DNA of 64,000 nt from Lepidodermella squamata (GCA_047495785.1 JBLDXI010000042.1:992001-1056000); one strand, 5' to 3'; counted from the stretch's first letter, positions 8,040-64,000 are shown. Notes: generated from the letters alone by a model not told the origin. Program-made: numbers and translations.

Positions 8040-8885
8040 ATGAGTGAAGCATGTGCAGCTGGTGATTTAGAAACCGTAGCACAACAGCTGGAAATCCTAC
8101 GAAATTCCAGCCAGTTGGAAATCGACTGGCGAGACGACCGCCCCGAACTGGACTGCGGCCTATGCGACTGCTACAAGCTACCAACTTGCCTCCACAGAGC
8201 CGCAGCAGCGTGCGGGCCTAACGACGGAGCTGTCCAAGTCGCGAAGCTGCTCATAGCAAACGGGGCTTCGATCAACTCAAGGGAAAAACTGAACGAAGAA
8301 ACAACCTTGATGTTAGCAGCAGCGAACAAAGACCCAGATGCGAAAATGTTGATATTTTTACTGGAAAAGGGGGCTGACTCCGCTTTGAAGAACAGCCATG
8401 GAGAAACTGCGTTGATGCAAGCGGCTCATTTCGCTCCGAACGGCGAGGCAGTTCGATGGTTGATCGAGACTGGGGCTACGATTGATGACGAGAACAACGA
8501 AGGAGAAACAGCGTTGAACTACGCCACTCAGAATATCAACGAAGAGTCGCTGCTTCTGCTGATAGAACGAGGCGCTTCGGTGAATCATAAGAACAAACGC
8601 GGCGAGAGTGTGTTATACCAAGCGGTGAGTTACGGCCAGTCGAACCCGGCTTTGGTGCTTATCGATCACGGGGCTGATGTGAATGAGAGGACGGCAAAGG
8701 GCGAGACTATTTTGATGGCTACGGCTAGGAATAATAACTTGGCTGTTGCTGAGGCGTTGCTGGAACGGGGAGCTTCAATTAGCGTTAGGAATAATGATGG
8801 TAAAAATGCCCTGCAAATCGCTATTGAAAATAATTCGGATGAAATGATTGAATTGTTGAAAGAGGGTGGAGCTACCGAGGAATAA
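8040..8885 (+). CDS. Ankyrin-repeat protein, 281 aa, apparently intronless
   Basis: About 7 repeats: GETALMQAA, GETALNYA, GESVLYQAV, GETILMATA, GKNALQIA. Confidence 0.9.
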   Translation: MSEACAAGDLETVAQQLEILRNSSQLEIDWRDDRPELDCGLCDCYKLPTCLHRAAAACGPNDGAVQVAKLLIANGASINSREKLNEETTLMLAAANKDPDAKMLIFLLEKGADSALKNSHGETALMQAAHFAPNGEAVRWLIETGATIDDENNEGETALNYATQNINEESLLLLIERGASVNHKNKRGESVLYQAVSYGQSNPALVLIDHGADVNERTAKGETILMATARNNNLAVAEALLERGASISVRNNDGKNALQIAIENNSDEMIELLKEGGATEE

Positions 8886-10302: not shown

Positions 10303-10395
10303 TTTTTTCAAATTGTCACTTTTTTCGATCAAAAGCGAACCTTTTCAATCATAAATAATTGATTGACGCGCCGCAATTAATTTTCTACTTAAACG

Positions 10396-10475
10396 GTATT
10401 TTTCATTTGACAGGTCTAGCATTAATTTTACATAAAATATTATAGAAATGTTCAATGTCATCAAGTGAAAAGGGG
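10396..10475. repeat. Fixed-spacer inverted-repeat element, copy 2 (upstream of channel A)
   Basis: TTTTTCATTTGAC-N48-ATCAAGTGAAAAGGGG. Confidence 0.8.
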
Positions 10476-10512
10476 CTTCCACTCATTTATGAATTATTAA
10501 ACCTCAAATTAA

Positions 10513-10640
10513 TCAGCCACTCGTCATGAGCAGGGAATAATTGTTGTGAAAACTCAGAAACAATGACTGAAAAATCATTTTGAACAGGCGAAATCGTTAT
10601 TCGTGACTACGCGACAGCGAACAGAGTAAAAAATACTTGA
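10513..10640 (-). pseudogene. Relic 3' end of a fifth, channel-C-like subunit gene
   Basis: Minus strand reads RCRVVTNNDF...NYSLLMTSG* versus channel C HSRVVRIIDF...NYFSHMING*; same position relative to the inverted-repeat element as the 3' end of C. Confidence 0.55.
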
Positions 10641-10711
10641 ATACTAATCTGCAGGAGGTTGAAAACGCTTTTCAATACTCTAATACTCATAATGCCCCTT
10701 GGTATTCTAGA

Positions 10712-10859
10712 AGAAGTGGGCGCGAAGTACGGGGGGAATGAGGGGTATCGTACCCCCCAGTTCGGCAGGCCAAAGTGGAAAAACCCTCAAAAAAGCACAG
10801 GGTCATAAAATTAGGACCCAAAAATACCCCCCAATTCAAGGATCCTACTTCGCGCACTG
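10712..10859. mobile_element. MITE-like element, possibly hAT-type (copy 2 of the ...CGCGCACTG family)
   Basis: Imperfect TIRs agtgggcgcgaagta / tacttcgcgcactg; flanks attctaga / attcttga (7 of 8 match, possible 8-bp TSD). Confidence 0.6.
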
Positions 10860-10975
10860 ATTCTTGAGTTTCTTTTTCGGTTTTCAACAAGGTTCAAGGT
10901 TACAATCATTGTGACATAAAACATCAAGTATTTGATAATAATATTTTGAGAAAGACAATGTTACAAGCTTGTGGT

Positions 10976-12343
10976 TTACTGTTCAGCCATGAGAGAGAAT
11001 AGAGTCATATCTATGAGAGTCACAGAGAACAAAACAACTAGCAGAACACTAAAGTCCAAAACTTTAATCCTGCGATTTTTTAATTCATGCAGCTTTCGAT
11101 CAGCAAGCTCAGATTCCGACATCACACTAGCCAGGCAAGCATAGACAGTGATCACTACTCCAGCGATGAATTTTGCCCCTATAACTGTGACAATATAAAC
11201 ATGCTCACCTGTTTTCGGGATCATCCCGAAAACCAGAGTTAAAATGACGGAATAAGCTGAAACCACGGTAACATTATAAGTTGTACGCTCTGGGTCGCCT
11301 GGCTCAATCATCAAACCCGCTAATTGAATGAAAAATAGGCTGAATGTTGGTACTAAAATGTTCCAGACGTAGTAGACAGGTTTTCGTTGGAATTTGAACA
11401 TAAATTTAAGCCTGGAGTAATTTTCGGTCGAATTATAAGACGAAACGACGAGGACCTCTGATTTGAGGTCGATCAACTGCCATATCTCGCTGTCGCCTAA
11501 AAATGCGTCTCGGGCTGAATCTTCGATGCCAAAAAACGAAATCGTGTAGTTTGCTTCTTCTATTGTTTCGTCAGAGTCGAAATATGCCGAGCAGATCTGA
11601 GTATCAAAGGGGAATTTCCGGAAACTGAATGAGGGACAGAATACGTCGAGCCGACCCAGAACAAACCAGTAAGCTTGATAGTCTTGCTTGAAGGGTGTAA
11701 TATAGACATTACCAAACTGTCTGTGGAGAGAAATGTGTTAACATTTTCAAGTAAAGTCGAAATTTTGCTAGCTACCGATTTTCATTTGATTAATTTTTAG
11801 TTTTACTCAGTAGAACTATTAGTATGTTATTTTTCTGTCAAATGAAAAGGGGTTGTAAGCTTAATTTATCAAATATTACTCGTTTTGTGGCTTGGCGTTT
11901 CTGACAGCCGATTGGTGGAGAATTGACGGTCGCCACGCTTTATCCGGGGGCTGGGCAAAGTAGATCGTTTGATAAATGAAAGTCGATTTCGGTGCGCATA
12001 ATCGTCGCCTTGTGGGAAATAGATCGACACATCGCGGTATTCGACAGGGCAAATTCCAGCTGTACTCTGTCCGTAAAATAAGCGACAGCCGCTGTTCAAC
12101 GTCACTGATTTCAACAAATCGGAAGAGACTCATTGAAATATCGACTTCAACTTGTTTGTTGAATTCGGTGGCCAGGCCGAATTCTGTTGGGATGTCATCG
12201 ACCGCGGCCGCTGGGCAAACTTTGTAATAAGCCTCCCTGACCTCATCTGCAAAGGATTGATTGTTAACATAATTGAATCTCGCACTTGTAACAGCAGAGG
12301 CACAGCAGGTCAAAATTATGAATGCCTTAAATTCTGCGAACAT
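10976..12343 (-). CDS. Divergent Cys-loop channel subunit B, 402 aa; exons 11880-12343 and 10976-11720
   Basis: Close paralogue of A; Cys-loop CPSFSFRKFPFDTQIC; in-frame phase-2 splice. Confidence 0.92.
11775..11852. repeat. Fixed-spacer inverted-repeat element, copy 3 (intron of channel B)
   Basis: CCGATTTTCATTTGAT-N46-GTCAAATGAAAAGGGG. Confidence 0.8.
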
Positions 12344-12447
12344 TTTGTGAAAAAACTGCCAACTTTGCCTCAAGAAAACAAACTTTTCTGGTCATCACTT
12401 ATTTATTAGTGCACTGAAAGTGCAAACTTGGGTTTTCTACGCTAACT

Positions 12448-12526
12448 CCATTTTTCATTTGATTAATCACGATAATTAAGCATTAAATCACAGTGAAATT
12501 ATAATTTTTGCCAAGTGAAAAAGGGG
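12448..12526. repeat. Fixed-spacer inverted-repeat element, copy 4 (between C and B)
   Basis: CCATTTTTCATTTGAT-N46-GCCAAGTGAAAAAGGGG. Confidence 0.8.
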
Positions 12527-12562
12527 CTTTTAGCTATTCATAAATTATTTAGCGAAAGATTA

Positions 12563-13835
12563 TCATCCATTAATCATATGAGAAAAATAATTAACGTCTA
12601 AAGTCAAAACAACAACCAAAATTATCACGAACACACAAAAATCGATAATTCTAACAACTCGAGAGTGAAATAGTCGACAAATCCGGAATTTTCGCTTAGT
12701 CAACATTGAATCACCGTAAAGGCAAGTCGAGCAAGAGTATATAGTTATAATAACACCAACAATAAATTTAACAGCCACAACTTGGACTAAATGAACTTTT
12801 TCAGCTGTTTTCGGGATCATTCCGAAAACTAGGGTTAGAATGACTGAAGAAGCCAAAACTACAGTAACAGCGAAAGACGGCCGTTCCGGGTCGGTTGGTT
12901 CGATCAATAACCCGGAAAGCTGGATAAAAAAAATTCCGAAAGTCGGAACTATGATATTCCAGATATAGTTATCAGGGATTCGCTCGAATTTCATCGTGAA
13001 AGTCAGACGATTTGAGGTGTAACTACCGTTGTTTGATACTGCGACTTTTGTTTCATACGTGAAGGGCTCGACAAGTTGCCAAACTGCACTTTCGCTTACA
13101 AAATCATCCCTAGCAGATGTGTCAATATCGAATTGTAGAATAGTATATTTGGCTTCTCGGGTTTGGTCCTCCGAGTCGAAAATCGCTGTGCATTCTTGCG
13201 TGTCGAAAGGGAACCGCTCAAAGCTGAATGATGAGCAGTAGATATCAAATCGGCCGAAAACAATCCATTCGCAGGAATATGTTTTCAAAGGATAGAAGTA
13301 TATATTGCTCATCTGGCTGGAAACGAAAGGCAAAATGTGTGACACTTTCCAGCTCAGCTATGAAAACTCACTCTTTTGTCGTCCTAGTTTTCGACATTGC
13401 TGTAACATGGGCCAAGTTCGGTCTCCAATGCTGCTCGCTAGGTCCGGTGAAGTACATTTCACTGAGATCGCCCTCGCATACATCAGGCTGTATTTTGAAA
13501 ATGTCTTTGCACTTCGGAACTTCGCATGGCAACGTCCAGCTGAAGAACATTTCAGCGAAAACAGAGAGCCGTTGGTCGATGTCGTTAATCTCCAGGAATC
13601 GGTATAACAAGAAGCGAACGTGTACATCAACGATTGATTTCATGCTAGTCGCGGCTGCGTACTCGAGGGCGAGATCTTTCGACCATGCGGCTGGGCACAG
13701 GTTCCTAAACCTCGTCCTCATTTCGTTAACGTAGGAAAAATTTCTCGCCGGAATTTCATAATCATCTTCATCCTCCTCATCTTCGGCGCTTGAGGTCGCG
13801 ACCAAGGCCAGGACAAATAAAAATCCCAGTTTCAT
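12563..13835 (-). CDS. Divergent Cys-loop channel subunit C, 405 aa; exons 13372-13835 and 12563-13316
   Basis: Signal peptide; acidic N-terminus; Cys-loop CSSFSFERFPFDTQEC; 4 TM; 55-nt phase-2 intron. Confidence 0.92.
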
Positions 13836-13910
13836 AGTGACGAACGCAAAAAAACAATGATAGAGAACAAAGTTCGATTAATAGTCATCAAAATCATCAA
13901 TAATTCATTA

Positions 13911-13991
13911 CCCCCGTTTTATTTGACAAATACGCCAAATTTAGCATAAAATATATGTGTCAAAATTTTGTTGTGATCAAGTGAAAAATGG
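13911..13991. repeat. Fixed-spacer inverted-repeat element, copy 5 (divergent promoter region of C and D)
   Basis: CCCCCGTTTTATTTGAC-N48-ATCAAGTGAAAAATGG. Confidence 0.8.
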
Positions 13992-14074
13992 CAATTATAA
14001 TATTTCTGTGTTAAATAAATAATTTAACGGGTTGAATCAACTGCAAGTTTTTTCGTTGAAAATCAGAATTAAGC

Positions 14075-15352
14075 ATGCTTTTCCAAATTATTTTTGCCAT
14101 TTTGATCCTCCCAACATGGACGCGAAAGTTTGATTTTCTGAATGGCACATCTTTCTCGTCAGAGTTTCAGGAGGCTTACTTCTCCTATTGCCCAAGTGCG
14201 AAGTCCTACTACCTTCCGTTGGAATTCGCTGCTGTTTATTTTGGCAGTAAAAAGCTCGTTAGCGTAACCGTTGATTTCGTACTGTTCCGCTTCATTGAGC
14301 TGAACGACGTTGATCAAAGACTATCACTTCTCGGCCAAATGTACCTTTCTTGGAATTTCCCATGCCCAGAGCCAACATGTGAACAGTTGCTGCCTAATCG
14401 AAGTGATGTGTGTTCGAGTGTTGATATGAAATACTTCTCGCAAGCTTATTTCAGCGTACCGAATACTAAAATCTGGCTGCCTAATTTGAACCACATCACT
14501 GCAATGTCGAGCCCAAGAACAGCAGTAGAGTAAGATTTTTCTGAAATATTCTGAGAATTCAAAATATTTTTTTTTAGCCAACTTAGCGACGTGTTCATTC
14601 AACCGTTTCAAGATCCGCAAGTGGAATGGTCATCAAGCGGGCGCTTTGATATCTACTGCTCTTCATTCTCCTTCAAACGGTTCCCATTTGATTCCCAAGA
14701 ATGCACAGCAATTTTCGAGACAGACACAGCCTCGTCCGATATTACCTTGGACTTGCACCTTTTTACTATAGATGACGCGTCTAAACATATATTCATTGGC
14801 AACAGTGAAATCTGGCAGTTGAAGGAGATAGACAGCAAGACGAGCACAGTAGCCGTGGAAAACGCCTTCGCGAACGCGACCCGACTTCATTACACTCTGC
14901 GATTCGACCGAAAGCCCGGCTACTACATTTGGAACATCCTACTACCAACTTTTGGCCTGTTCGCTATTCAAATCGGCGGCTTGATGATCGAACCTAACCA
15001 TGCAGAACGCGCGACCTTCGCTATATCCGTTGTATTAGCCGATTCAATCGTGCTAACCAGCGTTTTCGGAATGATCCCCAAAACCTCGGAAATGGTCTAT
15101 CTGGTATTCATGATTTTCTCAAAATACGTCTGCGGCGTTTTGGTATCACTCTACATAACAACCGCGTGTTGTTTCGGCGATAAGAAATTTGGCAGACAAG
15201 TTTTGACATTTCGACTTCTGAAAATAAGAGTTGTCCGACTATTGGACATTGCCGTAGGCTTCACAATACTATCTCTTATCATTTTTCTCGACATTATATA
15301 CTTTTACTACATGATAAACTCGAAACACCATTTATCACTTGACAATATTTAA
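14075..15352 (+). CDS. Divergent Cys-loop channel subunit D, 409 aa; exons 14075-14529 and 14578-15352
   Basis: Cys-loop CSSFSFKRFPFDSQEC; FDRKPGYYIWNILLP; 4 TM; 48-nt phase-2 intron at the same position as in A-C. Confidence 0.92.
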
Positions 15353-18062: not shown

Positions 18063-19660
18063 ATGGAAGTTTTTCCTACATTTATTCTTTACTTGTATCA
18101 CGCTATCGCCTTTGCTTTGATGGAGCCTGGGACAACTATTAAAGCAATCAGTCATTCATTTAAGGAAGGTCACGATGAGAAAACTAATCCTCTTTTTGCA
18201 CCTGAGTTGAATTTTCTTTCTTCAACAGCAGGGAAACCTTGTAACAGGCCGAGCTTTCATGAGATCAAGCCCTCAAAAGCGAGAATTTTTCGTGGCGAAG
18301 AGCTGCAAGGCCCAGCGCCTTGGATGGCTCGAATCATGTTTCGGTATGTCTCTCCTCTTGTTCAAGAATCAACCAACTGATCCATCTTAACAGGACAGAC
18401 CAAGGGGATTTAATTAGCAAGTTTGGGTAAGCTCAGATTTTGAAATTTAGGACAGCGAACTTATACCCTACAACAGTCGCTATCAAGGAATATGTACCGG
18501 CTTCTTAGTCTCGTCCGAGTGGGCTATCACAGCAGCTCATTGCATGACAGAAAACAGCACCCATATGTGAATTTATAGCGAAATCCACTCGAACTGGTTC
18601 ATTGTTCCTTCTTAACAGGCTCTGGGACGATCCTTACTACCATCCGATGAAATGCTTCAAGGACTATGACGTTGTAGTTCGTCTGGGCAAAGGGCCTATT
18701 GACGGACAGCCAAAAGATCGAAATTTTGTCGATATCCCAGTCGATCATTACGTGTATCCACAAGCATATAGACCAGGTATTTAATGAAATTAATATCCAT
18801 TCCAACCTCAAGCTTTTCCCTTAGCGGAGGAAGTCACTACGACGCATGGTGATATGGCTTTACTGCATCTCCACCTTAAAATGGCGACGAATAAGGAATA
18901 CACGGCATCAAATGCTGGCGAGAAGCACCTCTGTTTACCGGGCCCGAATGACGAATTAGATACTTTGCCTGAGAAGAGCCTGGACCCAAAACACACCTGC
19001 ATCGCATTGGGTAAATGCTCGAAATATCTAAAATTTCGAAAAAATTCAGTAATTTTCAGGATTTGGCCTGAGATATCCGAGAAATTTTGGAGAATTTGCA
19101 AACCCAAAAACGGCGATGGCTGGAAAGCTGAGACTGGGCGAAAAAGAGGCCTGCCTTAAGAATTACCCTTTCGCCATAAATGGTTCCGAAATATGCTTGG
19201 AAGGTTACATCGACGAATCAGCAACTATGCAAATTGGAGAGGATATGGACGAATTTTCGAGAAAACCATCCCGTGTGATGGAGATTCAGGCGGCCCGATA
19301 TTTTGCGTAGACCGTGAAAATCGTTACAAGTTATACGCTGTTTACGTCGCCGGTATCACTCGTTACGAAAAATGTGGCCTTGACGATTTTGCCATAGCAA
19401 CGAGTCTGCTCCATTATCGGAAATGGTTCGATGCCTTCTGGGCGTTTTGGCCGGTCTGGAAAGCAAAGTTTGACTGTTCCAGTCATGTTCAGGCTGCGAC
19501 GCAGTACTGCTTCGAGCGAATGCATCGGCCATGTGTTGGTGATATAAAGTGTGGCGTTAACAAAACGCATCGAACAGTTGCTTACAGCAGACGTCAGTAC
19601 CTATCGATGAAATCGAATCATCCTGATTACACTGTGCATACAGCCTTTTATTGCAAATAA
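18063..19660 (+). CDS. Secreted S1-family serine protease (paralogue 1) with Cys-rich C-terminal extension, multi-exon
   Basis: Signal peptide; activation site R|IFRG; CTGFLVSSEWAITAAHC; GDMALLHL; CDGDSGGP. Confidence 0.9.
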
Positions 19661-37658: not shown

Positions 37659-39274
37659 ATGATGAAATTCCTAACGCTTTCTGTTATATTATCTTTTAAA
37701 GTCGTACAAATCGACGCTGTAATCAAGTCAATATCTCACCACTCTGTATCTCATCAAGGTAACTAAAATTTGGGTGCGCTCATTCCTTTCTTACATTCTA
37801 ATTATTGTTTATTCCGATCGAAAAGGAAAGCCATGCAATAGGCCGGATTTCAAAGATGTTAAAAAGCCGAAAGCGAGAATTTTCAATGGCGATCGATTCC
37901 TGGGTCCAGCCCAATGGATAGGTGTGGTCATGTTTCAGTAAGTGCCCGCAATGAATTAACAATAACAGATCCAAAAATCATCGAATTGTTAGCAACAAGA
38001 ATGGAACTTTGGAAAGCAATTTTGGGTAATTTGATCATGAATTCAAGTTTCAAAGGCTGAAAATATCTTAGAAAGTACAATGGCCCATGCACTGGGTTCC
38101 TGATCGATGATGTGTGGGTACTGACAGCCGCCCATTGCATGGCTTTTAACGAACAGTTGATGTAAGAAACACCCAGCTTTTTCGACTATGAAATCTTATT
38201 GGTGCCAATTTTTCAAGGCGATGGGACCACAACTCATATTTTCACCCGCAGACGTGTAACAGAACCTATGATGTCGTCTTCCGATTTGGGAAGGGCCCTG
38301 TCAATTCTGACCCGGCTAAGACACCCTATGTCGACATTCCAGTTGATCATTACGTTTACCACAGCGACTTCAAATCAGGTTTTACTTCAATTTTTTATAA
38401 AGTTAATTTCTCATAGTTTCTCCAAGGCGATCCGACTGCTTTTGGCGACATAGCTCTGCTACATCTTCACATTGTGAGATCAACGGATAAGGGCTATACA
38501 ACCGCTAAAGCAAATGAGCGGCATCTTTGCCTCCCAAATTCAGACGATAAATTAGAGGCTTTGCCAGAAATCAGCAAAGATCCTGATCACACCTGCATTG
38601 CAATTGGTTTACATTTCGAATTTTTCCGAAAATCTTCGCTAGAATGTTGATTTGTAGGCTACGGATTGCGGTATCCATGGGATGACAGCGGTTCGAACTT
38701 TGCTCTCATCGGTAAGATTCAGCTGGGAGCAAGCAAGATTTGCAACCAGCATCGCACCTTCACGAAAGACGGGCCCGAGATTTGTTTCACGGGCTATGTT
38801 GACCAATCGAAAATTCCTAAGGTTAGCGATCCAAGGGATGAAACTGAAGTAGCGGCCGCTCGTATATCAGCCACCACCTTGACTTGTAAAGGAGATTCTG
38901 GCGGGCCTGTTTTCTGCCCTGATCGCTCTACCAGCCCTCCGAAATTTAAACTCTACGGCTTATCGATAGGCGGTACTGGGCAGATATGCGGGCTTCATAA
39001 TGTATCAATTGCTACCAGTCTGTTACACTACGGCAGTTGGCTGGACAAATTCTGGACCTTATGGCCAGGGTGGATGGGTAAATTTGAATGCGAACAGCAT
39101 ATACGTTCTGCGACCAAGTATTGTTTCGAGGTGATGCGACGGCCGTGCAATGGGGATATAAAATGTGGGCAAAACAAGACGCATCGAGCGGTTAACTACA
39201 ACAAACGAAGCTATTGGCACGTTAATTCGAATGACCCAAAATACATTGTTCACTCCGCATTTTATTGCCAATAA
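37659..39274 (+). CDS. Secreted S1-family serine protease (paralogue 3) with Cys-rich C-terminal extension, multi-exon
   Basis: Signal peptide MMKFLTLSVILSF; R|IFNG; CTGFLIDDVWVLTAAHC; GDIALLHL; CKGDSGGP. Confidence 0.9.
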
Positions 39275-50790: not shown

Positions 50791-51745
50791 ATTTATTTAT
50801 TTATTTATTTATTTATAAGCTTTAACGCCCTTGACAAGAGGTAATTTGAAAGTGAAACATGTAATTGCAGGACAGTTTACAGATGAATAGGACATTGGCA
50901 AATGATAACAAAAATTGCTTTTTACGAGTGCAGATAGTGTAGTAGTGATGTAACAGCAATTTTTAGGCAACAACAATTCTTGACAAGCTGGATAGCTTCA
51001 TAAAAATATAAGATACATACAAGACAAAATCAAGGCTAATTTATATTCAATTTCAATTTGCCGGCATTATTGGAATGACAATACAGATAAACAGCTTCAC
51101 GACATTCCTGCGCTGATTCTGCTTGATGTGCTGCCGTCGGAAGCTGGTTCCACCAATCAGGCCCGCGGTAACCTAAACTGAGTGCACCGCGCTCTTTGCG
51201 TTCTGTTGGCTTGATCATTGGCTCAAAGTGACGAAAGCCGTACGCGTTGACTGCGTTCAATAGAGTTTGCAACATTGATGGCGCTTGTTGATGTAGACAG
51301 TTCCAGATGAATGTAGCTAGGTGGATCCCGTGTTTTTGATTCACGTCGACCCAACCTAGACGGCGTCTTGATGGTTCGGGATCAGCCAAGGGATGTGCAC
51401 CGCAAATGACACGAATGGCCCGATCTTGAGTTGATTGCAATTTGGCTAGCGAACTCGGCTCTGCCTGACCCAGCGTGATGTCACCGTAATTCAAATGACT
51501 AAACACAAGCCCGTTGGCCATCGTAATCGCCGTCTTTCTATCGACAAACTTGACGGCCAAGCGAAGGGCGTAGAGCCCTCTTCTCGCCTTGCTCTTGGCA
51601 CTCCTTATTTGTTTCTTGAAGGTGAGTTTGTCGTCGATGATAAACCCGAGAGTTATCATTTCATTTGACGGTTGGACAACCACATCGCCGATAGTGATAG
51701 CGAAGTTTGGAGCCGAAGGAACGGCGCACTTGAGTATCATGTGTC
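50791..51745 (-). mobile_element. 5'-truncated LINE (CR1/L2-like): C-terminus of ORF2, 3' UTR and (TAAA)n tail
   Basis: TLGFIIDDKLTFKKQI, LVFSHLNYG, KLQSTQDRAIRVI, RRLGW, SLGYRGPDWWNQLP; (ttta)n at 50792-50816. Confidence 0.9.
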
Positions 51746-52518
51746 CGATACTTCGGAGGAAGTGCGTTCAAGTTCAAGCAGGGATAAATTGGGCGCCAGA
51801 ATCACTGAAAACTCTGCTGCCGTCGAATGTTGCGATTTGGCCGTTGGTTTCTGATTTGAATGACCGTGTCGACCCGGCCGCGAATTTCTCCGCCCCTACT
51901 ACGGCTCTTCCATTGGTCACCGGGCCGTTTGGCGTCTCGAACTCGGCGCTCTATTTCAATTCAACCAATGCTATGGCAATAACTTCTGCTGATAAGGTCA
52001 AGCTTAACAACGTCAGTTTTACTATTACTTTTCTCGCAAAGATGTCGACCCAGCCAGATAGGCCGCTCCTAGAATTCGCACCTGATGGAACAACGCCGGG
52101 TCTGAAAATTTTGGCTCATACCAACCAAACTTTCCGAATTATAGCTAACAGTACTGGTGCTGATTTTGATTTTCAGTGCCCGTTAAGCTTGGAATGGCGC
52201 TTTCTGGCAATTCTTTTCAACAGTAACAACAACAGACTTGCTGCTTACTGCGACAGAAATGAAGGGTTTTCAAGGGTTTCATCACGACCTGTAACTAGAA
52301 CTGGATCCCTCAGCTTGGCAAGGTTAGTTTAGTCTCAGTTTCACCTGATATGGGTATCCATTCAAAATGTGTGGTTTTGAAGGTCTTGGGCCAGTCCAAC
52401 TGAGCCGCTTATGGGCAGTATCGCCTGTCTGAGCATTTTCTCTACACTTCTGGATCAAGGCAATTTGCGAATTGCGGAAATCAACTGCGCTTCTTTTTCC
52501 GTTCCTGTAATGCGTTAA
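51739..52518 (+). CDS. LamG/ConA-like (pentraxin-fold) domain gene fragment; exons ~51739-52322 and 52383-52518; 5' end abuts the LINE
   Basis: AIWPL..D, GPFG..SALYF, SFTITF, PLLEF, WRFLAILFN, MGSIACLSIFSTLL; 60-nt phase-2 intron splices in frame. Confidence 0.7.
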
Positions 52519-52981: not shown

Positions 52982-55900
52982 ATGGAACGTAGTAATACTA
53001 TGCAAATGCAAATGAACTCAAAGCCGTTTTTATACATAAGCCGCACCCTTGATTACAAGTCGAGTGAAATTCAATGGCTAGCTAGTCGTCTTTCAAGCAG
53101 TTTCCAAGTCGTTTTCAACGATAACGATGATTTAGCACCCTCTTCTTACAAACAGGTTAGAAATTTTCCGAAAAATAGCCATTGAGTCTTGATTTTTCTT
53201 GCAGGCTATCGACCGATGTGAAGCTGTGTTGATTTGCTTCTCGGCGAAATTCAAAGACCAGCCAACGAATAAAGCCGAGATTGAGTACGCTGCTATGCGG
53301 CATAAACCCATGTTCGTGATATTTCTCGAAGAAATTCAAGAAAAATCTGGAAAATCGTGGCTCATTGCGAATCAACAAGACCACGTCGACTGCTTCTAGT
53401 TAGACGATTTGCAAAACGCGACCTACGGCATTGTCCACTCTTTGAAAGCTCAAATTGCGGCTTCGAAGATTGGCCTACAAGTAATTGGTGCTCCGGTGAA
53501 CGATTTCGATAAAATTATTCAAAGAAATGCGGCTAGTAAGGTGGATTTTTCGAAACTTTTGATGGAAGCTTGTTTCTCAGAAACTCGTAAGTCCTTGCCG
53601 AATTGTTTTACTGAAAATTTAGAATTTTTCGAAATTTAGGTTTGGTTATTCTATCTGGCCGGGCTGAAGTTGGGAAAACAGCTTTCCTCCTTAGCTTATT
53701 TCAAGACTCTGGCCTACAGAAGTTATTCAACGAAAGATGCGGCCTTCGAGCTGCGTTATGGGTCGACTGCATACGTTGGCGCGATAATTGGGACGATTTT
53801 GCAGCTGAAAGGCTGAAAAAGCGATTAGACCATCTTATCAGCGTTCACCACCCTGAAATGCTGACCTCTGCTGATGTAACCAGCGATGACAAACGCGACT
53901 GCCTTTTCGTGCTGGATAACGTGTATCGGCCGGAGATTTTCAAGGTTGTTCAAGACCATTTGTGCTCGAATAAATGGCCAGCGGTTGTTGTATGCCGCGA
54001 AAAATCAGTCGATCACGGAATGGTGAAACAGAAATCATTTTACCTACCGCCCTTCACTGAGCAAGAAATTTCCGCATTGATCGCCGCTTCCGAATTTGAA
54101 ATTGAAAAGGAAGAATTACACTCGATTTACAAGAATTGCGACGGTTTGCCCAGAAAAGCTTTGCGGCTAGCGAAATCTTCAGTTAGTCAAAACAACTGGT
54201 TCTCATGTTGCTCGAAACGAAATTCGAAAATCGACCCTTTAGATGACTGCTTCGTCGATCTATCGAATGTCAAACCTGAGCGGAGTGATTTCAAGACGAG
54301 TAGCGTGGATATCGATTTTGTTAGCGTTCCGAACCTTGACATTGCTTACTACAGACGGCGAGAGGAAACTGACCTAATGTCGAACCTGAAAAGTCTAGAA
54401 ACAGGCCTATTGATGGTTTGCGGGTCTGGTGGTAATGGGAAATCGACTTTAGTCTCGAAAACTCTGAGAACTCAAGCTGGTAATCATCCATTCAACACTA
54501 TTTTCTGGCTTAACTGCTATCGGTGGTATCGAGGGGTGGAAAAACGGCCTGAATACGTCGAGTTTGTTCAGAGGCTAATGGAACTCGGCGCTGAAAATGC
54601 TCCGCCAGAACAGTCTAGAAAATGGTTGAAAATTCGCGATATGGTCAAGTATTTTCGAGAGGACCGACATCGAAAAATCCTATTCATATTGGACGACTGC
54701 TATCATCACTCATTGGTCGAATCGTTCATGAAGCTTACCAATGCTCCGTTTATAGCAATCACCCGTCAAGCAGATTGGTTAGCAGGGGTTAAAGTTGAGA
54801 GTCAAATCTACGTGAAACGGCTGTCCGAATCAGTGATTTGTGACATGTTGTTAACAAATTACGAATTGAAGGATCGATTGGCCCTTGAAGACATCATATA
54901 CCTTGCTAGGGAATGCCATGGTTCCCCGATTGTCGCTGGCCTAATCGGGGGTCGATTTTCGAGGCAAAAGGACTGTAAGAAGGTACTCAGGAACGTGCAA
55001 ACCTCAGAGAATATCCATGCGGCGAATATTTCTGAGGAAGCTGTGATTTCAAACTTATTTCGAGAAACTTTGAGGCAATGTGATACGGAGGTTCGATTTC
55101 GTTATTTCACCTTCCTACTCCTAAACCCTGGCAAGCCATTTCGAGTCTGCGAGTCGATGAATCTATGGGGCCTCAGTTCGGAGGATGAAGCTCTCGAAAC
55201 TCTGTACTTCTTCGAAGAATTGGGTCTGGTAAGGCCGACCCGTCTTCAGAGGAAGAAACAGCCCGGTTTCGAACTAGCCTACCAGATCCATCAAGTTCTT
55301 CACGAATCTGCTCTAAATTCTGCCTGGTCCCTCTTCCAATCGAAATGCTCCACAATCAACGAAGTAAGGATTCAAATAATGGCGGAATGTTCGAGTCGAA
55401 TGAAGGCCTTGAACGATCTGTTAACCGAGCCGATCAATCTAGCTACGAAGGTCGCTCTTTTCCTATATAAGGCAATTGTATTAGACCTAGGCGATCTTGT
55501 CAAACGAATTTGCTACAAATTCAAACCCGGTGATTTTAAGAAGCTCATCAAGCAACAGGTCGAGCAAATATCATCGGAGGGCGTTAAGCTTCAATGTAAC
55601 GATGAAGGTCTAACCGCCTTAATGGCAGTTGCGAGGTATGGCGATAAGGACTTCATCAACCTAACCTATCGGTTTTGCCCGGAGAGCATCAAATTGATCG
55701 ATTCTTCAAATGGAAGGACGGCACTTCTATCAGCGGCTGAGAACGGGAACCTTGACGCGGTTAAATTTCTCCATAAAAAATGGCCTGAAGCTTTGGTTCT
55801 CTACGACAAATCTGGCATGACGCCTTTATCGAAAGCTGTGGCTAATGACCATTTAGAGGTGTGTAAGTACCTCGCTGAAAATTGGCCGAGGGATGTACCG

Positions 55901-56938
55901 GTTTCGAACGAACTAGGCGTAACTCCTCTGTCAATCGCGACGAGATACGGCTTCACTCGGATCTCGAAAATGTTCATCGAGTATTGGCAGAATCTCCCGG
56001 AAGATCCTGGTTTAATAGTCGAGCTAGAGACAAAACGAGCCCCTCTCCACTGGGCGGCTGAAAGTGGAGATTTAGGCCTAGTTATCTTCCTAGCAGAGCG
56101 ATCGCCCCTATCTATCGATCTCAGAGACTCCGAGGGCTTTACCCCGATTCATCTTGCGATTAAGAAGAAACGCTACCCTATAGTTCATCACCTGGTTGAG
56201 GTTTCGATGTATACGGTCAATGTTCCTGATCTGGATGGGAAATGGCCTATTTCGATGGCTGCGGAGGTTGGGTCGTTAGAGCTGGCCGTTCTTCTAGGCG
56301 AACGCTACCCTGAAACAATCGATAAGTGCGACGATCGAGATGGCAAAACTGCTCTATGTCTCGCGGCTGAAAACGGCCATCTCGAGATAGTGAAATACTT
56401 CGCAGAAAAGTCGCCTGATCTCCTAAAATTGGGCTCGAAAGGCCAAGTTCTTCCGATAATGTTCGCCTCAGCTCATGGCAATCTCGACTCGGTGAAATAT
56501 CTCAGTGAAAAGTGGTTCGAAAGCCTGAAAATGACAGATCGGGACGGCAAAACACCGCTTCACTTCGCGATTGCAGCAAATCAAATCGAGGTGACAAAAT
56601 TTCTATCAACAACTTGCCCTGAAACTATTCGGTACAAAGAGTCGACTACAGGCCGAACCCCTTTAGCCGTAGCCGCTTTTGTAGGCAGTTTGGTCTCAGT
56701 TGAGTTTCTCAGCTCGAAATGGCCTGACGCTATGAAAATGTGTGACAATGACGGCCAAACCCCGCTGATGCTAGCTGTCAGTAAGAAGCACGTGATAGTC
56801 GCTAAATTTCTCGCCCAGAGATGCCCGGAATCGATTGACATTCAGGACAATACTGGCTACACACCGCTAACACTGGCTGATTTGAATAATCTCACTGAGA
56901 TATCTGAATTTTTAGCCGTCTTGAGTAAACGGAAATAA
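52982..56938 (+). CDS. TIR - STAND NTPase - STAND NTPase - ankyrin protein, copy 1; exons 52982-53155, 53205-53586 and 53640-56938; in-frame TAG at 53397-53399
   Basis: TIR (FLYIS, AIDRCEAVLICFS, KAEIEYA); Walker A GRAEVGKT / Walker B LFVLDNV / GLP; second GSGGNGKST / LFILDDC / ITR / GSP / IHQ; ~12 ankyrin repeats. Confidence 0.85.
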
Positions 56939-57187
56939 AATAACCAAGTCGCAATATTGCCAACGGGTTTTTCGCCTTATTAATTATTCATAATTCTTAC
57001 CTGGGGTTGTATATCGATTCGCGATGGGCTAAATCAATATAAAGAAGCGCGTCTCACCTAACGAACGAAGCAAACAGACGCAAAAACACACATACCGCGC
57101 TGTTCGTAAAGTAAAACGGGGAATTCTACGTCAACCACAAATGGTCCACCAAGCGTCGATTTGAACGAATTATCTCCTAGTGGCCCG

Positions 57188-60100
57188 ATGATAGGGCTCA
57201 CGAATCTTAATCGGCCCATAGTCTACATCAGCCATTGCCATGATTACCGGCCTAGTGATGCAGCTTGGATTGCGAATCGACTACTTGCCCATTTTCAAGT
57301 GATTTTCCGTGAAAGTCACGCAAATTTCGATGAAGAGAAGATGCGAGAGGTATGTTTTCTCGATACTCATCAAATCTTACTGATTTTCATTGAATTTCAA
57401 TCTCAGAACATCGGCAGAAGTGACTGCGTACTGATCTGCTATTCAAACAAGTATCGAGATAGGAAAAATTGTCTAGCCGAGCTGAACTATGCAGATCTAC
57501 AGCAGAAACCTTTTTTCACGGTAGTTCTACAAGAAGATGCTGAAAAAACTGGCCGGCCGTGGTTGGTCATTAATCAGCATGAATACAAGGTCTGCTCAAA
57601 TCCAGAGGCCGTTAACAGCGCTATTCACGACATTGTTTTTGGAGTCAAACAACAAATCGCTTTAGTTAAGTAAGTCTTCAAAGCCAGTTCACATTTTGGA
57701 GGTTAAAATCGATCTACACCAGGGGTGCGCTGAGGCTGTACGGCACCTCGTTCCCACAATACAAACTGTATGGCCGGAAGAAGGATGTTGTCGAAGAATT
57801 TGCTCAGCACATCCTGGAAATGTCAACAGGATCGAGCGATAATCGTGAGCTATCATTTTTGTTATCCCTAGCAACCGTTGCTGTGATAATGCGTCGTTTT
57901 TGAAAAAGGACGCTTTTTCATGGTAACCGTTGCTAAGGATGATTGAATTTCTATTTTAGTTGTCCTTGCGATCACTGGCAAAGCTGAAATCGGGAAAACG
58001 TGTTTCCTTATCGTAAATTGGCCAATTTGAACATGCAAGACCACTATCAAAACAAATGTGGCCTGCGTAACGCCTTATGGATCGACTGCATCAAATGGCG
58101 GGATCATTTCGACGAATTTCAGGCGACAGCCCTTCACAACAGAATTTTACATCTGATGAAACCTGTCGAGAAATCACGCGATTTTCTGATAGTCTTCGAC
58201 AGTGTTTACCGCTTCGACGTCTATAAGGCGATTCTCGACTTCGATTGCATCAAAAATGTGCCTAAAATCGTTGTATTGCGCGACGAAACTTACGACGAGT
58301 TCTTGAAAGAGTTCAATGGGTCGCAGACCAACTACAAGCCTCGACTGTTGAAACTACCGCCGTTCACTGATAAAGACATAGTGGCAATGTTACTGGACAC
58401 CCACGACCTTCGAAGCTACAACGCTGATCAGCAGGAGATTAATTCCATAGCGAGGGCTTGCATGGGCCTGCCTGGTAAAGCAACGAAAGCGGCTAATATT
58501 TTAAGAACAGGTTCGGCTTGAACCTAGCAATTTATAGTAAAATTGAACTCGATTAGAAATAGGTGAATGGAAGTCGGGTTTTTGCTGCGTGAAACGGCCA
58601 ACTAACGTCGACCCTCTAGCTGAGTGTCTTAGCATGAAAGATATCGTTAGACCCGAATTTCTGTCACCCGAAAAATTCGAATCTCTGAACGAGCCCAGGG
58701 CTCTAAAGTAAGTTGTAGAATGGAGCCTCCAACAATAATTTAGTAATCTTTCTTAATAGATTCGTTGGGGTACCCAATATTGACGTTGTAATCTACTCGA
58801 GGAGGGAAGAGCGTGATTTGCTCAAGGGGCTCAAATCTTTGATCGATGAGGAATCGAGAGGTGAGTCCACATTCCTACGCTTTCGTTCGACTATTGGGTG
58901 TTTCCAAAAGGGGTTCTCATGGTGTCTGGATCAGCTGGGAGTGGAAAATCGACCCTGGTCTCAAAGGCCCTCAGAAACCAACGAAATCTCGATTTTCTCA
59001 GAACCAAATGCAATATTTCAATTGTGATGTGGCTCAGCTGTTTCCGATGGGGCAAGGGGATTACTACGAGGGCAGTTACCCACGAGTTCTCCCAGGCCTT
59101 ACTACAGCTTGGCTCAAACCTCGCCTCAGACCAGGACTATCGGAAGTGGCTAAGAGTTCGGGACATGATTCAATTCTTCGAAGAGCTCAACAATCCATCG
59201 ATCTTATTTGTCCTGGACGATTGCTGTCACGTGACTGTATTTGGCACTTTCCGGAAATTGGTCGAAAACTCCCCCTGCATCGTCATAACCCGCGACGCCT
59301 CACTGATGATCGGTGTCAGAATTGCTCAACAAATCGATTTGCCCAAATTTTCGGACGCTGCAATTATCGATATGCTGCAAACGAACTACGAACTGAAGGA
59401 CAAATTGACAGATGAAAATCTGGCCGAAGTCGCGAAAAAGTGCTATGGGCTCCCTATTCTGGCTAATCTTGTCGGTGGGAGATTCGTCAGCCAGCAAAAT
59501 ACCCGGAAAATCCTTGTCCAGATTCGCTTTCAAGAGTCGCAACTTGTTGGGAATAACGGATCTCTGAAATTGAGCGAGGAAGCTTTGGTTCAACATCACT
59601 TCAAACAACTGATGGCTTTAAGAGATGAAGAAGAACGGTTCCGCTACTTCACCTTCCTCCTATTGAATCCTGGTAAGGCGATTCGCGTCAGTGAACTCGC
59701 GGCATTATGGGGCCTTGAAAATCCAACCGAAGCTTCGGCTCTACTAAGATCTTTCGAAGAATGTGGCTTGTTGAGGCAATCGAAATCCCAGGGCGAATTG
59801 GCGTTTCAAATCCATCAAATGTTACACGAAGGTGCTCTAATCCTAGCTAAGGCCTACTTCCGGCTCGAAGATGCAAACATATCCCAAATCCGCATTCAAA
59901 TCATGGCTGAATCAGCTTTGAAGATGAAAGGCTTGAACTATCGCTCCCCAAGCCCGCCGAATCTCGCGGCTCGAATCGCCCTATTCCTATACAAATCCAT
60001 CGCGTTGGATATGTCTGAACTTGCCAGGAAAATCGTGTTCAAATTCAACGGCGGCGAGTTTCGAATGATATCTAAAATGAGTATAGACCCGGTCTCTTTA

Positions 60101-61240
60101 CCGGAAATTGCGAAACCTCAATGCTCAGTAACTGGGTTAACAGCTCTAATGGTTGTGGCGAGGTATGGCGATGTAGACCTGGTTAAGATTGTCCGATACT
60201 TCTGCCCAGATTCTGTCCGCATCGTTAATGAAAAGGACGGAAGGACCGCTTTATCTTTCGCCGCTCAAAGCGGCCATTGCGACGCGGTTCAATCGCTGTT
60301 TCATTGGTGGCCTGAAGCTTTGACTTTGGTCGATAAATCTGAGATGACCCCCCTCAGCTGGGCTGTAGCGAATGATCACCCAGATGCGACGAGATTTCTC
60401 GCGAAGGAATGGCCAAGTGACGCTAGAATCGCCGACTCAATCGGCCGAACGCCGTTATCTATTGCGACCAAAAACGGGTATTCCCTAGTCGCGAAGGTCC
60501 TGACCGATAACTGGCTACTCCGGGTCCAGGATATGGGGCAAATGGTTGAGAGGGACACGAAACGTACCCCTCTCCACTGGGCGGCTGAGAACGGCGATTT
60601 GGGCATGGTGATTTTCCTATCTGAGAGGTACCCACTTGCTATAGATTGGAAGGACGTGAATGACCAAACGCCGATGCAAATCGCAGTTCAACTCGGGCAT
60701 TATGGTATAGTGCGGCATTTTGTTGAAATTTCGCCGTATACAGTCAATATTCCGGACTCGAACGGAAAATGGCCTGTTCAAGTTGCGGCGGAGAAGGGGT
60801 ATCTAGACATGGTCCATATCCTGTTGGCGAAGTACCCCGATGCGGTGGACCAATTCGATGAAATCGGGGGTAGGACGCCTGTTTCAATAGCCGCAGAGAA
60901 CGGGCATCTCTCCGTTGTGAAATTCCTCCACCAAAAGTCACCGAAATGTATAGAGGTACCGTCCAATACTGGCAGGATACCTGTTATGTGGGCTGCTATG
61001 AATGGACATCTTCCAGTAGTGATATTTCTAGCGGAACAATGGCCTGGGGGCCTGAGAATAATGGATAAGAGCGGGAAAGCGGCTCTTCACCACGCCCGTG
61101 AGAGAAATCACGTTGAAGTGGCCAAGCTACTCTCTGACCTGTGTCCTGAATATCTGATAGTTCAGGAATCAGCCGCTCTAATGATTCCTCATGAAATTCA
61201 TGCTTTGATACCGGTTGATGATCAGTCTTCAACAGCTTAG
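57188..61240 (+). CDS. TIR - STAND - STAND - ankyrin protein, copy 2 (7 exons); apparent 1-nt deletion frameshift at ~58012
   Basis: TIR (IVYISH, SDCVLICYS, LAELNYA); GKAEIGKT, LIVFDSV, GLP; GSAGSGKST, LFVLDDC, GLPI, IHQML; ~9 ankyrin repeats. Confidence 0.85.
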
Positions 61241-61755
61241 TAACGTCTCTACTCGCTTTTTTCCTTATTAGTAATTAGTAGCTTTATCTTGTCCTTCAAC
61301 TCTCATTTTCCCGGTTGAAACGTTTGAAACGAACAGAAAGCTGTTTCCTTACTTCCAATGCATTGTCAATTACTGAATAAAACAAGAAACTGAAAGCTCT
61401 CATTATTTATAAGCAAATACGGCCGGGGCTCTTTGGCTTTTAGGATTGGAGATAAGGTTCTAAAATCGCTGTATCCACAACCCCTGATTTTCGACTGATT
61501 TTTACATTTTCATTGACCAAAAATAGATAAGAAGATTTGCGATATTTTTATGTCTACGCGTGTTGTAATTGTGTTATCAATAATTTATCTTGCGGTGTCA
61601 TTAACTATTCTATCAAATACCGATCATCTCAATGGCCACAACACACGGTCGATATCTCGTTAAGGTCTTAGCAACCTGCGCTCACTCGTGTCTCCCACAC
61701 GGGACAATTCGACCCTGTTAGGTTAGTAGGGCATATCATCTCTCAATTTCAAACG

Positions 61756-64000
61756 ATGGCTAGCCTAGGCAAACCGGTGATTTTCATCAGCTATCATCCC
61801 GCTGTAAGGAAGAATGACGTATTATTGCTGGCTAAAAAGCTCGCCAGTAATTTTGTTGTCAATTATGAAAAATCGAGCAATCCAGATGTTAACAGAACTA
61901 AAGAAGTAAGCATAACTCATAAACTGCCCTAAAATTCTTGAAATACTCTTACTTTCCAGACAATTGAACGAAGTGACTGTTTTCTCGTCTGTTATTCGAA
62001 CAAATATCGAGAGAGATCCGTCAATTTGATCGAGCTAACTTATGCTGACTTTAGGCGCAAACCAATCTATTCAATTTTGATGGAGGAAGACATACAACGA
62101 ACAGGGAATCCTTGGCAGATCCTCAGTCAACACGATCAAATCAAGTGTCTAACAGCCGAAGATATCAAAAACTCAACAAGTGACGTAGTAGTCGGGTTAA
62201 AACGCGTTTTGGCTGCTTCTAAGGCAGGAATAAGGCTAATCGGCTGCCAGATACCTCATGAGAAGCTTTACCAAAGGAAAAAAGAGGTTTTGGATGGTTT
62301 TCTTGGCAATGTCCATGGAATTTCTACAAATCCAGATGAATGTAAGCCTTTCTAAGAAGAAACGACTTGAAATTTCAGAACTGTCGTTATTCCAGCTCTT
62401 TTGGTTGTAACCGGAACGGCTGATGTAGGAAAAACTTGCTTTGTAGTCAACATATTGCGAGATCCAGCTCAACTAGACTATTTTTCATCGAAATGTGGTT
62501 TGAAAGCTGCATTTTGGATCGACTGCATCAAGTTTCGCTATGACTTCGACCAGTTTTCTATCGACAGGTTCAAGCAACGATTAGATGCGTTAGTCAAGTC
62601 GCAGCATCCTGAAATTGAGACTTTGCCAGTTGGCGGGCCAGATGGTACCTCATACGACTGCCTTTTCGTTTTTGATAACGTGTTCAATGCTCAAATTCTG
62701 CAAGTCATTCATGAACATTGCAGTTCACATCTATGGCCAACGATTGTGATCATTCGAGAGGAAAACTTGGATGAGATTCAAATCAAAGCGAGAAAAATTC
62801 GGCACCGAAAATTTGAGGTTTCAGCTTTTACAGAACAAGATATTAATGACATGCTACTGGAAACGTTCGAACTAAGGAAGTACAACCTTGATCAACAAGA
62901 AATACGGAATATTGCGAAATCTTGCGCTGGAAATCCAAGAAAAGCAGTTCAAGCTGCAAAAATTCTCCGAGCTGAAGGTACGGGTCTAGTTAATCCCATA
63001 TTTCTACAAAAAGTATGATTCTAGGTGAGCAAATTTCGATCTCATGCTGTTTGAAACGAACAAGTAAGGTCGACCCTCTATCGGAATGTTATCCCGAAAT
63101 CCAGCAAAAGTCGACACTTGAAGTTATAAAAACTGAGCCTGATACCAGCTCGCATTCGGCATTCCCAGCTCGAAGCAACGTATACTATAAAAGAAAAGAA
63201 GATTCAGTTTTCCAAGCCGGATTGATAGCGGTATGTGAAGCTGAGGCCGATCATACGCTCTGTGTTAGTGGCTCGGCTGGGTCCGGGAAAAGCTGCCTAG
63301 TCTCAACAAATCTACGCCAAAAAGCGATGGTTGAGATCCTCAAAGACCGATTCAAGATCCATGTTGCGATTTGGGTCGATTGCTACAGATGGAGGAAAGG
63401 CGTGACAAATCGAGACGAAGTGTTCGAGTTCAGCCAAACCGTACTGAATCTGCTTAAATCGAAATTCCGCGTTCAATCTATGGAAGAAATCTACTCGGTC
63501 GCGAAATTCATTCAAGTCGTGAAAAACGAATTAGGGCAACGAATCTTGTTCATTTTCGACAATTTTCAACATTCAACGATTTTGGAAATGTTCCGGAAGT
63601 ACCTTGAGGTCCAATCGCCCTGCATTGTGATATCTGAGCCTGGGAATGAGCCGAATAGTAACATTATCGAAATCGGGAAATTGCCTGAGGAGGTCGTTGT
63701 AGACCATCTCCAGACAAGTTGTGAGTTGAAAGACCGGCTTAGTTTCGAAGAGCTCTCCGAAGCAGCGAAATTGAGCGATGGTTCATTCGTGGCAGCTTCC
63801 CTTCTCGGAGGCCAACTTACTCACCAGAAGAGAATCCTTGCGAGAACTGAGCTAAAATCGATGTTAACCTCAGAAATCAATCAATCGACTGTAGAGGCAT
63901 TGGATGGAGCTGAGAAACGGAAGTTTTTTACTTTCCTCCTGTTCAACCCTGGGACGTCACTCCTAACAACAGATCTTGCCAAGCTTTGGGGCTTAGCAAA
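61756..64000 (+). CDS. TIR - STAND - STAND (- ankyrin expected) protein, copy 3, truncated by the window edge
   Basis: ATG 61756; VIFISY, SDCFLVCYS, LIELTYA; GTADVGKT, LFVFDNV, GNP; GSAGSGKS, LFIFDNF; no lesion seen in the part translated (introns ~61906-61959, 62342-62395, 62978-63024). Confidence 0.85.

Follow-up and report, generated by a model that had tools for sequence, protein, structure and literature searches.

Several plant immune receptors carry two nucleotide-binding modules in one polypeptide. Rice Pib has tandem NB-ARC modules in a single receptor of the nucleotide-binding, leucine-rich-repeat type (NLR) (PMC4917536), wheat Sr62-NLR is a tandem NB-ARC NLR that is genetically required for immunity (10.1101/2024.08.30.610287), and Wheat Tandem NBD 1 (WTN1), with a tandem nucleotide-binding domain (NBD), assembles into a calcium channel and is likewise needed for immunity (10.1101/2024.08.30.610185). 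The need for WTN1 and Sr62-NLR in immunity implies that tandem-NBD NLRs can work. In animals, amphioxus has TIR-NB-ARC proteins (PMC2246300) and corals have NACHT/NB-ARC proteins with ankyrin as a C-terminal repeat class, in tandem pairs or triplets (PMC4083563); the portions of these two sources available to us do not describe a double NBD. Here we describe three head-to-tail paralogous genes of Lepidodermella squamata, at positions 52982-64000 on the plus strand of a 64,000-nucleotide (nt) stretch (GCA_047495785.1 JBLDXI010000042.1:992001-1056000; the whole stretch is called the window below), in which a TIR domain is followed by two NTPase modules, termed module 1 and module 2. TIR-NB-ARC receptors stand at the heart of effector-triggered immunity in plants and are, to our knowledge, hardly known from animals.

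Like Pib, Sr62-NLR and WTN1, the encoded proteins have two NB-ARC-type modules per chain. The plant proteins, however, have a coiled-coil head and leucine-rich repeats (LRRs), whereas here we find a TIR head, an ankyrin sensor, an animal host and a module 1 that is cut after ARC1; the origin is certainly independent of the plant tandem-NBD NLRs, and the locus is an analogue, not a member of their clade. The N-terminal TIR with a Glu in helix alphaC, followed by an NB-ARC switch, resembles plant TIR-NLRs (RPP1, ROQ1, RPS4), and indeed RPP1 and RPS4 TIR chains and ROQ1 and RPP1 NB-ARC domains are among our structure and profile matches. Unlike these receptors, the locus encodes no LRR or C-JID, an ankyrin sensor and an extra NBD-ARC1 module, and identity to them is 11-18%. 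Structurally, module 1 is matched best by Apaf-1, CED-4 and Dark (Z 10.5-11.3 over NBD-HD1), and the family shares with such AP-ATPases a Pfam NB-ARC domain and an APAF/Dark-type winged-helix domain (WHD), but these proteins differ in their CARD head, WD40 sensor (or none) and single NBD. Our literature search found no description of an animal protein with TIR, double NBD and ankyrin repeats. The layout is unusual but not unprecedented: tandem NB-ARC modules are known in plants, and the TIR/double NBD/ankyrin variant is new. An earlier note on this DNA had stated that NLRs normally carry a single STAND domain, to which the three plant proteins are exceptions, and had called ankyrin sensors typical of fungal and bacterial NLR-like proteins and not of animal NACHT-LRR NLRs; the coral NACHT/NB-ARC proteins with ankyrin repeats are animal examples of such a sensor class (PMC4083563).

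Results

Three tandem genes share one architecture

The window has about 43% GC and very short GT..AG introns and is eukaryotic. The three gene models (Table 1) were rebuilt manually, and their translations and alignments to one another served as checks. All 11 introns are GT..AG, ten of them 47-57 nt long and one 115 nt. The order TIR, module 1, Cys-rich linker and module 2 (NB-ARC) is common to the three copies, followed by ankyrin repeats in copies 1 and 2. Aligned end to end, the copies are 32-49% identical per domain, which marks them as old paralogues and not recent duplicates. The gene models and the alignment thus bear out the single architecture proposed in the earlier note, and every motif quoted there was found at the expected position in the translated models. 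A search of the whole window for a fourth copy found none.

Table 1. Positions of the three receptor genes, their parts and the two lesions, counted from the first letter of the window.
Feature	Position	Strand	Description
Copy 1 gene	52982..56938	+	3 exons (52982-53155, 53205-53586, 53640-56938); 1284 codons
Copy 1 in-frame TAG	53397..53399	+	C-terminal part of TIR, codon 123
Copy 1 module 1	53586..54190	+	Residues 186-369; NBD + ARC1/HD1; span contains 53-nt intron 53587-53639
Copy 1 linker	54191..54397	+	CCxKRxxKxDPLxxC motif and pre-P-loop VP..YYRRREE segment
Copy 1 module 2	54398..55306	+	Complete NB-ARC: Walker A, DD, ITR, GSP, winged helix, QIHQVLHE; Pfam NB-ARC 44.1 bits
Copy 1 ankyrin array	55709..56935	+	Pfam Ank_2 E 1.6e-60; matches between open reading frame residues 690 and 1079
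Copy 2 gene	57188..61240	+	7 exons; 1224 codons; frame broken once; ankyrin array shorter than that of copy 1
Copy 2 module 1	57960..58510	+	Single exon between phase-1 introns
Copy 2 1-nt frameshift	~58016-58018 (58013..58020)	+	Just after module 1 Walker A (…GKAEIGKTCFLIV / LANLNMQ…)
Copy 2 module 2	58911..59860	+	NB-ARC with winged helix and IHQ; Pfam NB-ARC 38.1 bits
Copy 3 gene	61756..64000	+	Exons 61756-61905, 61960-62341, 62396-62977, 63025-64000+; 696 codons
Copy 3 module 1	62396..62977	+	One symmetric phase 1-1 exon, 582 nt; sequence used for the structure model
Copy 3 module 2	63246..64000	+	Degenerate motifs: Walker B DN, ISEP at sensor 1, GSF for GxP

A single uninterrupted open reading frame (ORF) of 1098 codons, free of stops and introns, runs in copy 1 from module 1 through the linker and module 2 to the end of the ankyrin array; both NTPase modules are thus part of one coding unit irrespective of splicing. 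In copies 2 and 3 the parts are joined by phase-compatible GT..AG introns. The reading frame of copy 3 is intact over its whole visible length and open to the end of the window, which cuts inside module 2; the MHD region and C-terminus of this copy lie beyond that point. No C-terminal prenylation motif is present in the two complete copies, which end in …LSKRK (copy 1) and …QSSTA (copy 2).

The copies also differ in their introns. Four introns of copy 2 (57670-57722, 58511-58562, 58708-58759 and 58861-58910) are missing from copy 1, the intron after module 1 is common to copies 2 and 3, and the intron between TIR and module 1 is longer in copy 2 (115 nt). Such differences indicate that intron gain or loss is active among the three paralogues.

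Module 1 is a truncated NB-ARC

The Walker A motif of module 1 reads GRAEVGKT, GKAEIGKT and GTADVGKT in copies 1, 2 and 3, respectively, with GxxxxGKT kept in all three. In Walker B (LFVLDNV, LIVFDSV and LFVFDNV) the Asp is kept and the next residue is N or S, and thus not acidic. The sensor-1 Arg (VVVCRE, IVVLRD and IVIIRE) and GxP (GLP, GLP and GNP) are kept as well, although module 1 is only 36-42% identical between copies. From GxP to the next P-loop there are about 70 residues, of which about 30 align to the pre-P-loop segment, and this leaves no room for a winged helix; furthermore, the motif table has no MHD-like motif after module 1 in any of the three copies. Since both the winged helix and MHD are missing, module 1 is a truncated NB-ARC (NBD + ARC1) and not a complete second switch.

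Comparison of the two modules by blastp gave E-values down to 1.4e-13, and in hhalign 167 columns, spanning Walker A to GxP, aligned with a probability of 99.4% (E 1.4e-21). The homology reaches about 37 residues upstream of the P-loop, into the pre-P-loop segment. Module 1 is thus a real homologue of the NBD-ARC1 part of module 2.

An AlphaFold2 (AF2) model of copy 3 module 1 (pLDDT 85.6, pTM 0.77) has the beta-alpha-beta order of a P-loop NTPase and a helical lid. With this model, Foldseek returned NRC3, Apaf-1, NRC4, NRC2 and CED-4 at the top (E ~2e-6), while VIA gave a Z of 11.3 to Apaf-1 residues 150-334 and of 10.9 to Dark, in both cases corresponding to NBD plus HD1. Module 1 is thus predicted to fold like the NBD-HD1 of Apaf-1, Dark and the NRC proteins. 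The protein-language-model neighbours of module 1, which do not depend on the AF2 alignment, are NB-ARC/STAND clusters (score 0.92). The earlier note had described module 1 as a P-loop STAND-type module lacking a winged helix and had named its fold as a check; the hhalign result, the match of the model to the NBD-HD1 of Apaf-1 and Dark, and the motif table all agree with that description.

Module 2, the linker and the ankyrin array

Module 2 carries GSxGxGKS and ILF(I/V)(L/F)D(D/N), and in copies 1 and 2 also ITR, GxP and QIHQ(V/M)LHE. In these two copies we found Walker A, the hhhhDD Walker B, the sensor-1 Arg, GxP, the winged helix and the MHD-like His, and both score above the Pfam NB-ARC cut-off of 23.5 bits (Table 1); module 2 was rightly called complete for them. 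Weak Pfam matches to MarR/IclR winged helix-turn-helix domains were also seen on copy 2. In copy 3, Walker A, the Asp, the Arg and GNP persist in module 1, whereas module 2 loses three motifs, and the two modules of this copy may be undergoing complementary degeneration.

The linker between the modules is conserved across the copies at 31-48% identity. It contains a motif with three invariant Cys, CCxKRxx(K/N)(I/V)DPLx(D/E)C (54200-54250, 58580-58630 and 63040-63090); metal binding or acylation by this motif are guesses.

The ankyrin repeats noted earlier in copies 1 and 2 were confirmed by matches to Pfam Ank families at E 1e-60 to 1e-49 (Ank_2 E 4e-49 for copy 2). Pfam scans gave no LRR family at E <= 1, and the receptors would accordingly be NLR-like in working but are not NBD-LRR proteins, as a canonical NLR (NBD + LRR) would be.

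The TIR domain keeps an invariant Glu

Pfam TIR_2, proposed earlier as a check of the TIR assignment, scored above its cut-off of 28 bits on copy 2 (38.0 bits), exon 2 of copy 1 alone reached 23.6 bits, and the TIR exons of copy 3, scanned singly, gave no TIR_2 match. The three TIRs are 32-37% identical and share an invariant Glu (E83, E79 and E75 in copies 1, 2 and 3) within AEIEYA, AELNYA and IELTYA, respectively. A profile of the second TIR exon searched against the PDB gave meaningful matches only to TIR chains (SIGIRR, RPP1, RPS4 and Cat1), while phmmer searches of PDB sequences with the TIR and with the NTPase region gave chance matches only. In the RPP1 and RPS4 matches, which are themselves weak (E 0.056-0.22), the invariant Glu pairs with that of CLDEL and that of CVREL, respectively; it lies within the predicted alphaC helix (H93-104) of a moderate TIR model (pLDDT 70.5). 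The fold matches of this model include ThsB, TIR-STING, SPARTA TIR-APAZ, RPS4/RRS1 and SARM1, mixed with DNPH1-type hydrolases. The alphaC Glu is catalytic in SARM1 and plant TIRs, and the Glu found here is a plausible candidate for the same role on the basis of alignment and model. Of the intact catalytic Glu that the earlier note had claimed, then, the invariance in all three copies and the position in a predicted alphaC helix hold, and the catalytic identity is plausible, given the weak matches.

Origin of module 1

In phylogenetic trees, the module 1 copies form one clade (100/100) and the module 2 copies another (99/98), so the two-module layout is older than the divergence of the three genes. 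A clade uniting module 1 with module 2 was neither recovered nor firmly rejected: the approximately unbiased (AU) test gave P-values of 0.033 for the full set of rows and of 0.117 and 0.149 for the sets lacking long branches. As a judge between internal duplication and capture from a paralogue the tree is therefore unstable, the AU P-value shifting with the rows kept, and we set it aside. The statement in the earlier note that the modules arose by internal duplication is not decided by these trees. In a 620-residue MAFFT alignment made for both modules, the module 1 rows fell onto module 2.

The exon structure gives a further hint. In copies 2 and 3, the NBD-ARC1 part of module 1 is exactly one symmetric exon between phase-1 introns, with the pre-P-loop segment at the 3' end of the preceding exon, and copy 2 has a phase-1 intron before module 2 at a site homologous to that of the intron before module 1. 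The symmetric exon, together with the homologous phase-1 intron, points to DNA-level exon duplication or shuffling as the source of module 1.

Relatives are rare, and the seven fetched loci have a single NBD

With module 1, linker and module 2 as the query, HMMER run exhaustively over 1.84 billion representative proteins returned nine matches at E <= 0.001. In all nine, the part with the highest score fell on module 2 or on the linker just ahead of it, and never on module 1. The best seven of the nine come from metagenome assemblies, on contigs with animal genes (Cys-loop channels, Sushi, Band_7, G-alpha). NB-ARC was found at E < 1e-5 in eight of the nine and weakly in P0001 (E 0.0024), ankyrin repeats in four and a TIR in one. 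All seven metagenomic loci that we fetched (L001-L007) encode one NBD each, and the double-module layout is not among them. The earlier proposal of a lineage-expanded receptor family is supported, and the family is lineage-restricted as well.

The single-NBD relatives have KCG…WxxCxxW, a VP..Y.R.E pre-P-loop segment, a winged helix and an ankyrin array. The motif WxxCx(R/K)W, which had been taken as private to the two modules, is thus also present in these relatives, along with the preceding KCG. One single-NBD relative, P0002 (L004:1821-3851), has an internal duplication of the ARC1 segment only (…KQCRGRPLLADL… then …LKCYGLPILAGL…), which indicates that partial NB-ARC duplications recur in the receptor family. 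A separate homologue search, with the copy 1 NTPase region and with the module 1 alignment, gave no matches in a collection that evidently does not hold the proteins of this genome. The stretch L001:4415-5014, considered as the TIR of a relative, was rejected because it failed to align to the TIR rows and, on inspection by eye, resembles a glutathione S-transferase.

Two copies carry lesions

Two of the three genes each contain one disabling lesion in the assembly (Table 1). Removal of the TAG or of the frameshift by alternative introns was considered and rejected, as the only GT..AG pairs there would give introns of 15 and 27 nt that are out of phase. The only public sequencing run with the locus, X1, behaves as DNA: introns and intergenic sequence are covered and there are no splice joints. 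A 933-nt X1 contig (57316-58248) reproduces the frameshift region with 0 gaps, and an X1 contig spanning the TAG is identical to the assembly over 53354-53689; X1 may be the source sample of the assembly, and so these contigs do not count as independent support for the lesions. A second X1 contig of similar depth over 53354-53689 differs at 24 of 336 letters (7%), with the TAG site not readable. The presence of two X1 contigs over the same stretches of copy 1 reflects either very high heterozygosity or a close paralogue elsewhere.

The X1 variants listed for the copy 1 coding sequence (39) comprise 31 synonymous and 8 non-synonymous changes, with 12 synonymous and 4 non-synonymous in module 1. 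The 31:8 ratio points to coding constraint and indicates purifying selection on the coding sequence of copy 1 until recently. Copies 1 and 2 look, from their lesions, like null alleles or pseudogenes of recent origin, and such disabled copies fit the birth-and-death turnover of immune-receptor clusters.

Neighbouring genes

Elsewhere in the window there are a Sushi and ankyrin ORF (6172-6981, minus strand), an ankyrin-only ORF (8040-8885) and three ORFs with Cys-loop channel ligand-binding domains (8939-15352). Cys-loop and Sushi genes also adjoin the NB-ARC-ankyrin gene in L001 (2374-11306), and this may be a conserved neighbourhood. Two ORFs (19193-19660 and 38666-39274) have C-terminal trypsin-domain matches (E ~1e-4) and are likely to be serine-protease exons. 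Two overlapping ORFs with no Pfam match, 51036-51740 (minus strand, 234 codons) and 51589-52332 (plus strand, 247 codons), lie directly upstream of copy 1 and may be a transposon remnant.

Discussion

The reading that we favour, with moderate confidence, is that the locus is an old, lineage-restricted cluster of animal STAND receptors with an ancestral TIR/NB-ARC/ankyrin architecture, into which an extra NBD-ARC1 unit was inserted before the three genes diverged, and in which module 2 would be the switch that clusters the TIRs. The extra unit would consist of the pre-P-loop segment, the NBD and the ARC1/HD1 lid, placed between the TIR and the full NB-ARC switch. In the mechanism that we propose, the ankyrin array would keep module 2 in an ADP-bound, off state through the winged helix and the MHD-like IHQ motif. 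A ligand or perturbation would then lead to nucleotide exchange and oligomerisation of module 2, and this would bring the N-terminal TIRs together. Because the alphaC Glu is kept, the clustered TIRs would be expected to cleave NAD+ or to make a nucleotide signal. Module 1 most likely would bind nucleotide and hydrolyse it poorly, since it lacks the second acidic residue of Walker B (DN or DS in its place) and the MHD sensor. It might form an accessory tier between switch and TIR that aids oligomerisation or sets spacing, or it might be a cis-regulatory pseudo-protomer that acts as a cis-lock.

A number of our observations weigh against the insertion of a functional extra module into a TIR-clustering receptor. 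In the assembly, copies 1 and 2 are disabled and only copy 3 is intact as far as visible; module 2 of copy 3 has lost the second Asp of Walker B, the Arg of sensor 1 and the Pro of GxP. Our searches for RNA runs covering the locus found none, yielding the DNA-like X1 and an unrelated run, X2, with no splice joints, and the joining of the TIR exons to the NTPase exons is for this reason inferred only. Pfam gave no NB-ARC match and nothing above threshold on module 1, where the best match is NACHT (E 0.0064, 16.8 bits against a cut-off of 26.7) on the P-loop of copy 3 only; similarly, a profile of module 1 alone found no STAND protein in the PDB and only a RuvB lid (E 0.16). The input alignment for the AF2 model of module 1 contained module 2 and Apaf-like rows, which biases the fold, and in VIA AAA+ clamp loaders reach the same Z as Apaf-1. 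As for the TIR, the PDB profile matches are individually non-significant (E 0.05-0.7), and the model is of moderate confidence and its fold matches are weak (E 6e-4 to 1e-2).

A bolder claim, to which we give little credence, is that, among animal STAND receptors, these proteins form the first class to have two nucleotide-binding tiers. Their second assembly layer or cis-lock, set between a plant-like switch and a TIR of the NADase type, would be an NBD-HD1 that hydrolyses poorly and is carried on a shufflable phase 1-1 exon. The layout would have arisen separately from the tandem-NBD NLRs of wheat and rice, and in some members (copy 3) the two modules would have exchanged roles.

We think it unlikely that the cluster is simply decaying, that is, that the three copies are pseudogenes or genes near loss and that the presence of two modules is without function here today. 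The TAG in copy 1, the frameshift in copy 2, the shortened ankyrin array of copy 2, the three motifs missing from module 2 of copy 3 and the failure to find an RNA run with the locus would all be expected from decay. Yet the single lesion in each of copies 1 and 2 is the only break in frames that are otherwise open over 1284 and 1224 codons, and copy 3 is open over 696; the copy 1 variants are predominantly synonymous (31 versus 8), and the module 1 motifs have been kept between copies as divergent as 36-42% identity.

A rather more doubtful possibility is that module 1 is an integrated bait or cis-inhibitor, either a pseudo-NBD that docks on module 2 or a mimic of NB-ARC surfaces targeted by effectors. 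Such a role would suit a module that lacks the WHD, the MHD and the second Walker B acidic residue and that sits in cis beside a complete switch. Structures of effector-bound NRC-type NLRs have been solved, and NRC3-AVRcap1b tops the fold matches of module 1. Nevertheless, the kept Walker A, sensor-1 and GxP motifs argue for real nucleotide binding over surface mimicry.

A stacked double ring clustering an enzymatic TIR, as suggested in the earlier note, in which each module would form a complete STAND ring in the manner of type II AAA+ proteins, is improbable. These proteins (ClpA/ClpB/Hsp104, NSF, p97) do share with our locus two tandem P-loop and lid modules per chain, and the module 1 model matches modules of ClpA, ClpB and Hsp104 (Z ~10.4), but they belong to another clade with no homology beyond the AAA+/STAND core; the likeness is an analogy only. 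In type II AAA+ proteins one module is often a poor hydrolase used for assembly. STAND rings assemble via NBD-HD1-WHD contacts, which makes a stacked double ring less likely for a module 1 without a winged helix, and a linker of about 70 residues separates the two modules. Lastly, we can hardly credit an artefact of our gene models, with a TIR and short-NTPase gene lying beside a separate NB-ARC-ankyrin gene: no transcripts were found for the locus that would speak against it, but copy 1 runs from module 1 to the ankyrin array in one ORF without stop or intron, the linker is conserved (31-48% identity, CCxKRxxKxDPLxxC), and phase-compatible introns link the parts in copies 2 and 3.

Returning to the reading of an extra NBD-ARC1 unit inserted into an old receptor cluster, the locus would offer an independent natural experiment on the coupling of a STAND switch to a TIR enzyme. 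It would also be a convergent counterpart to the recently found plant tandem-NBD helpers WTN1 and Sr62-NLR, whose second NBD is not understood, and would show the way in which a receptor can gain an entire P-loop module through one symmetric exon. With nine matches in 1.84 billion proteins, the receptor family is so rare that standard annotation would miss it.

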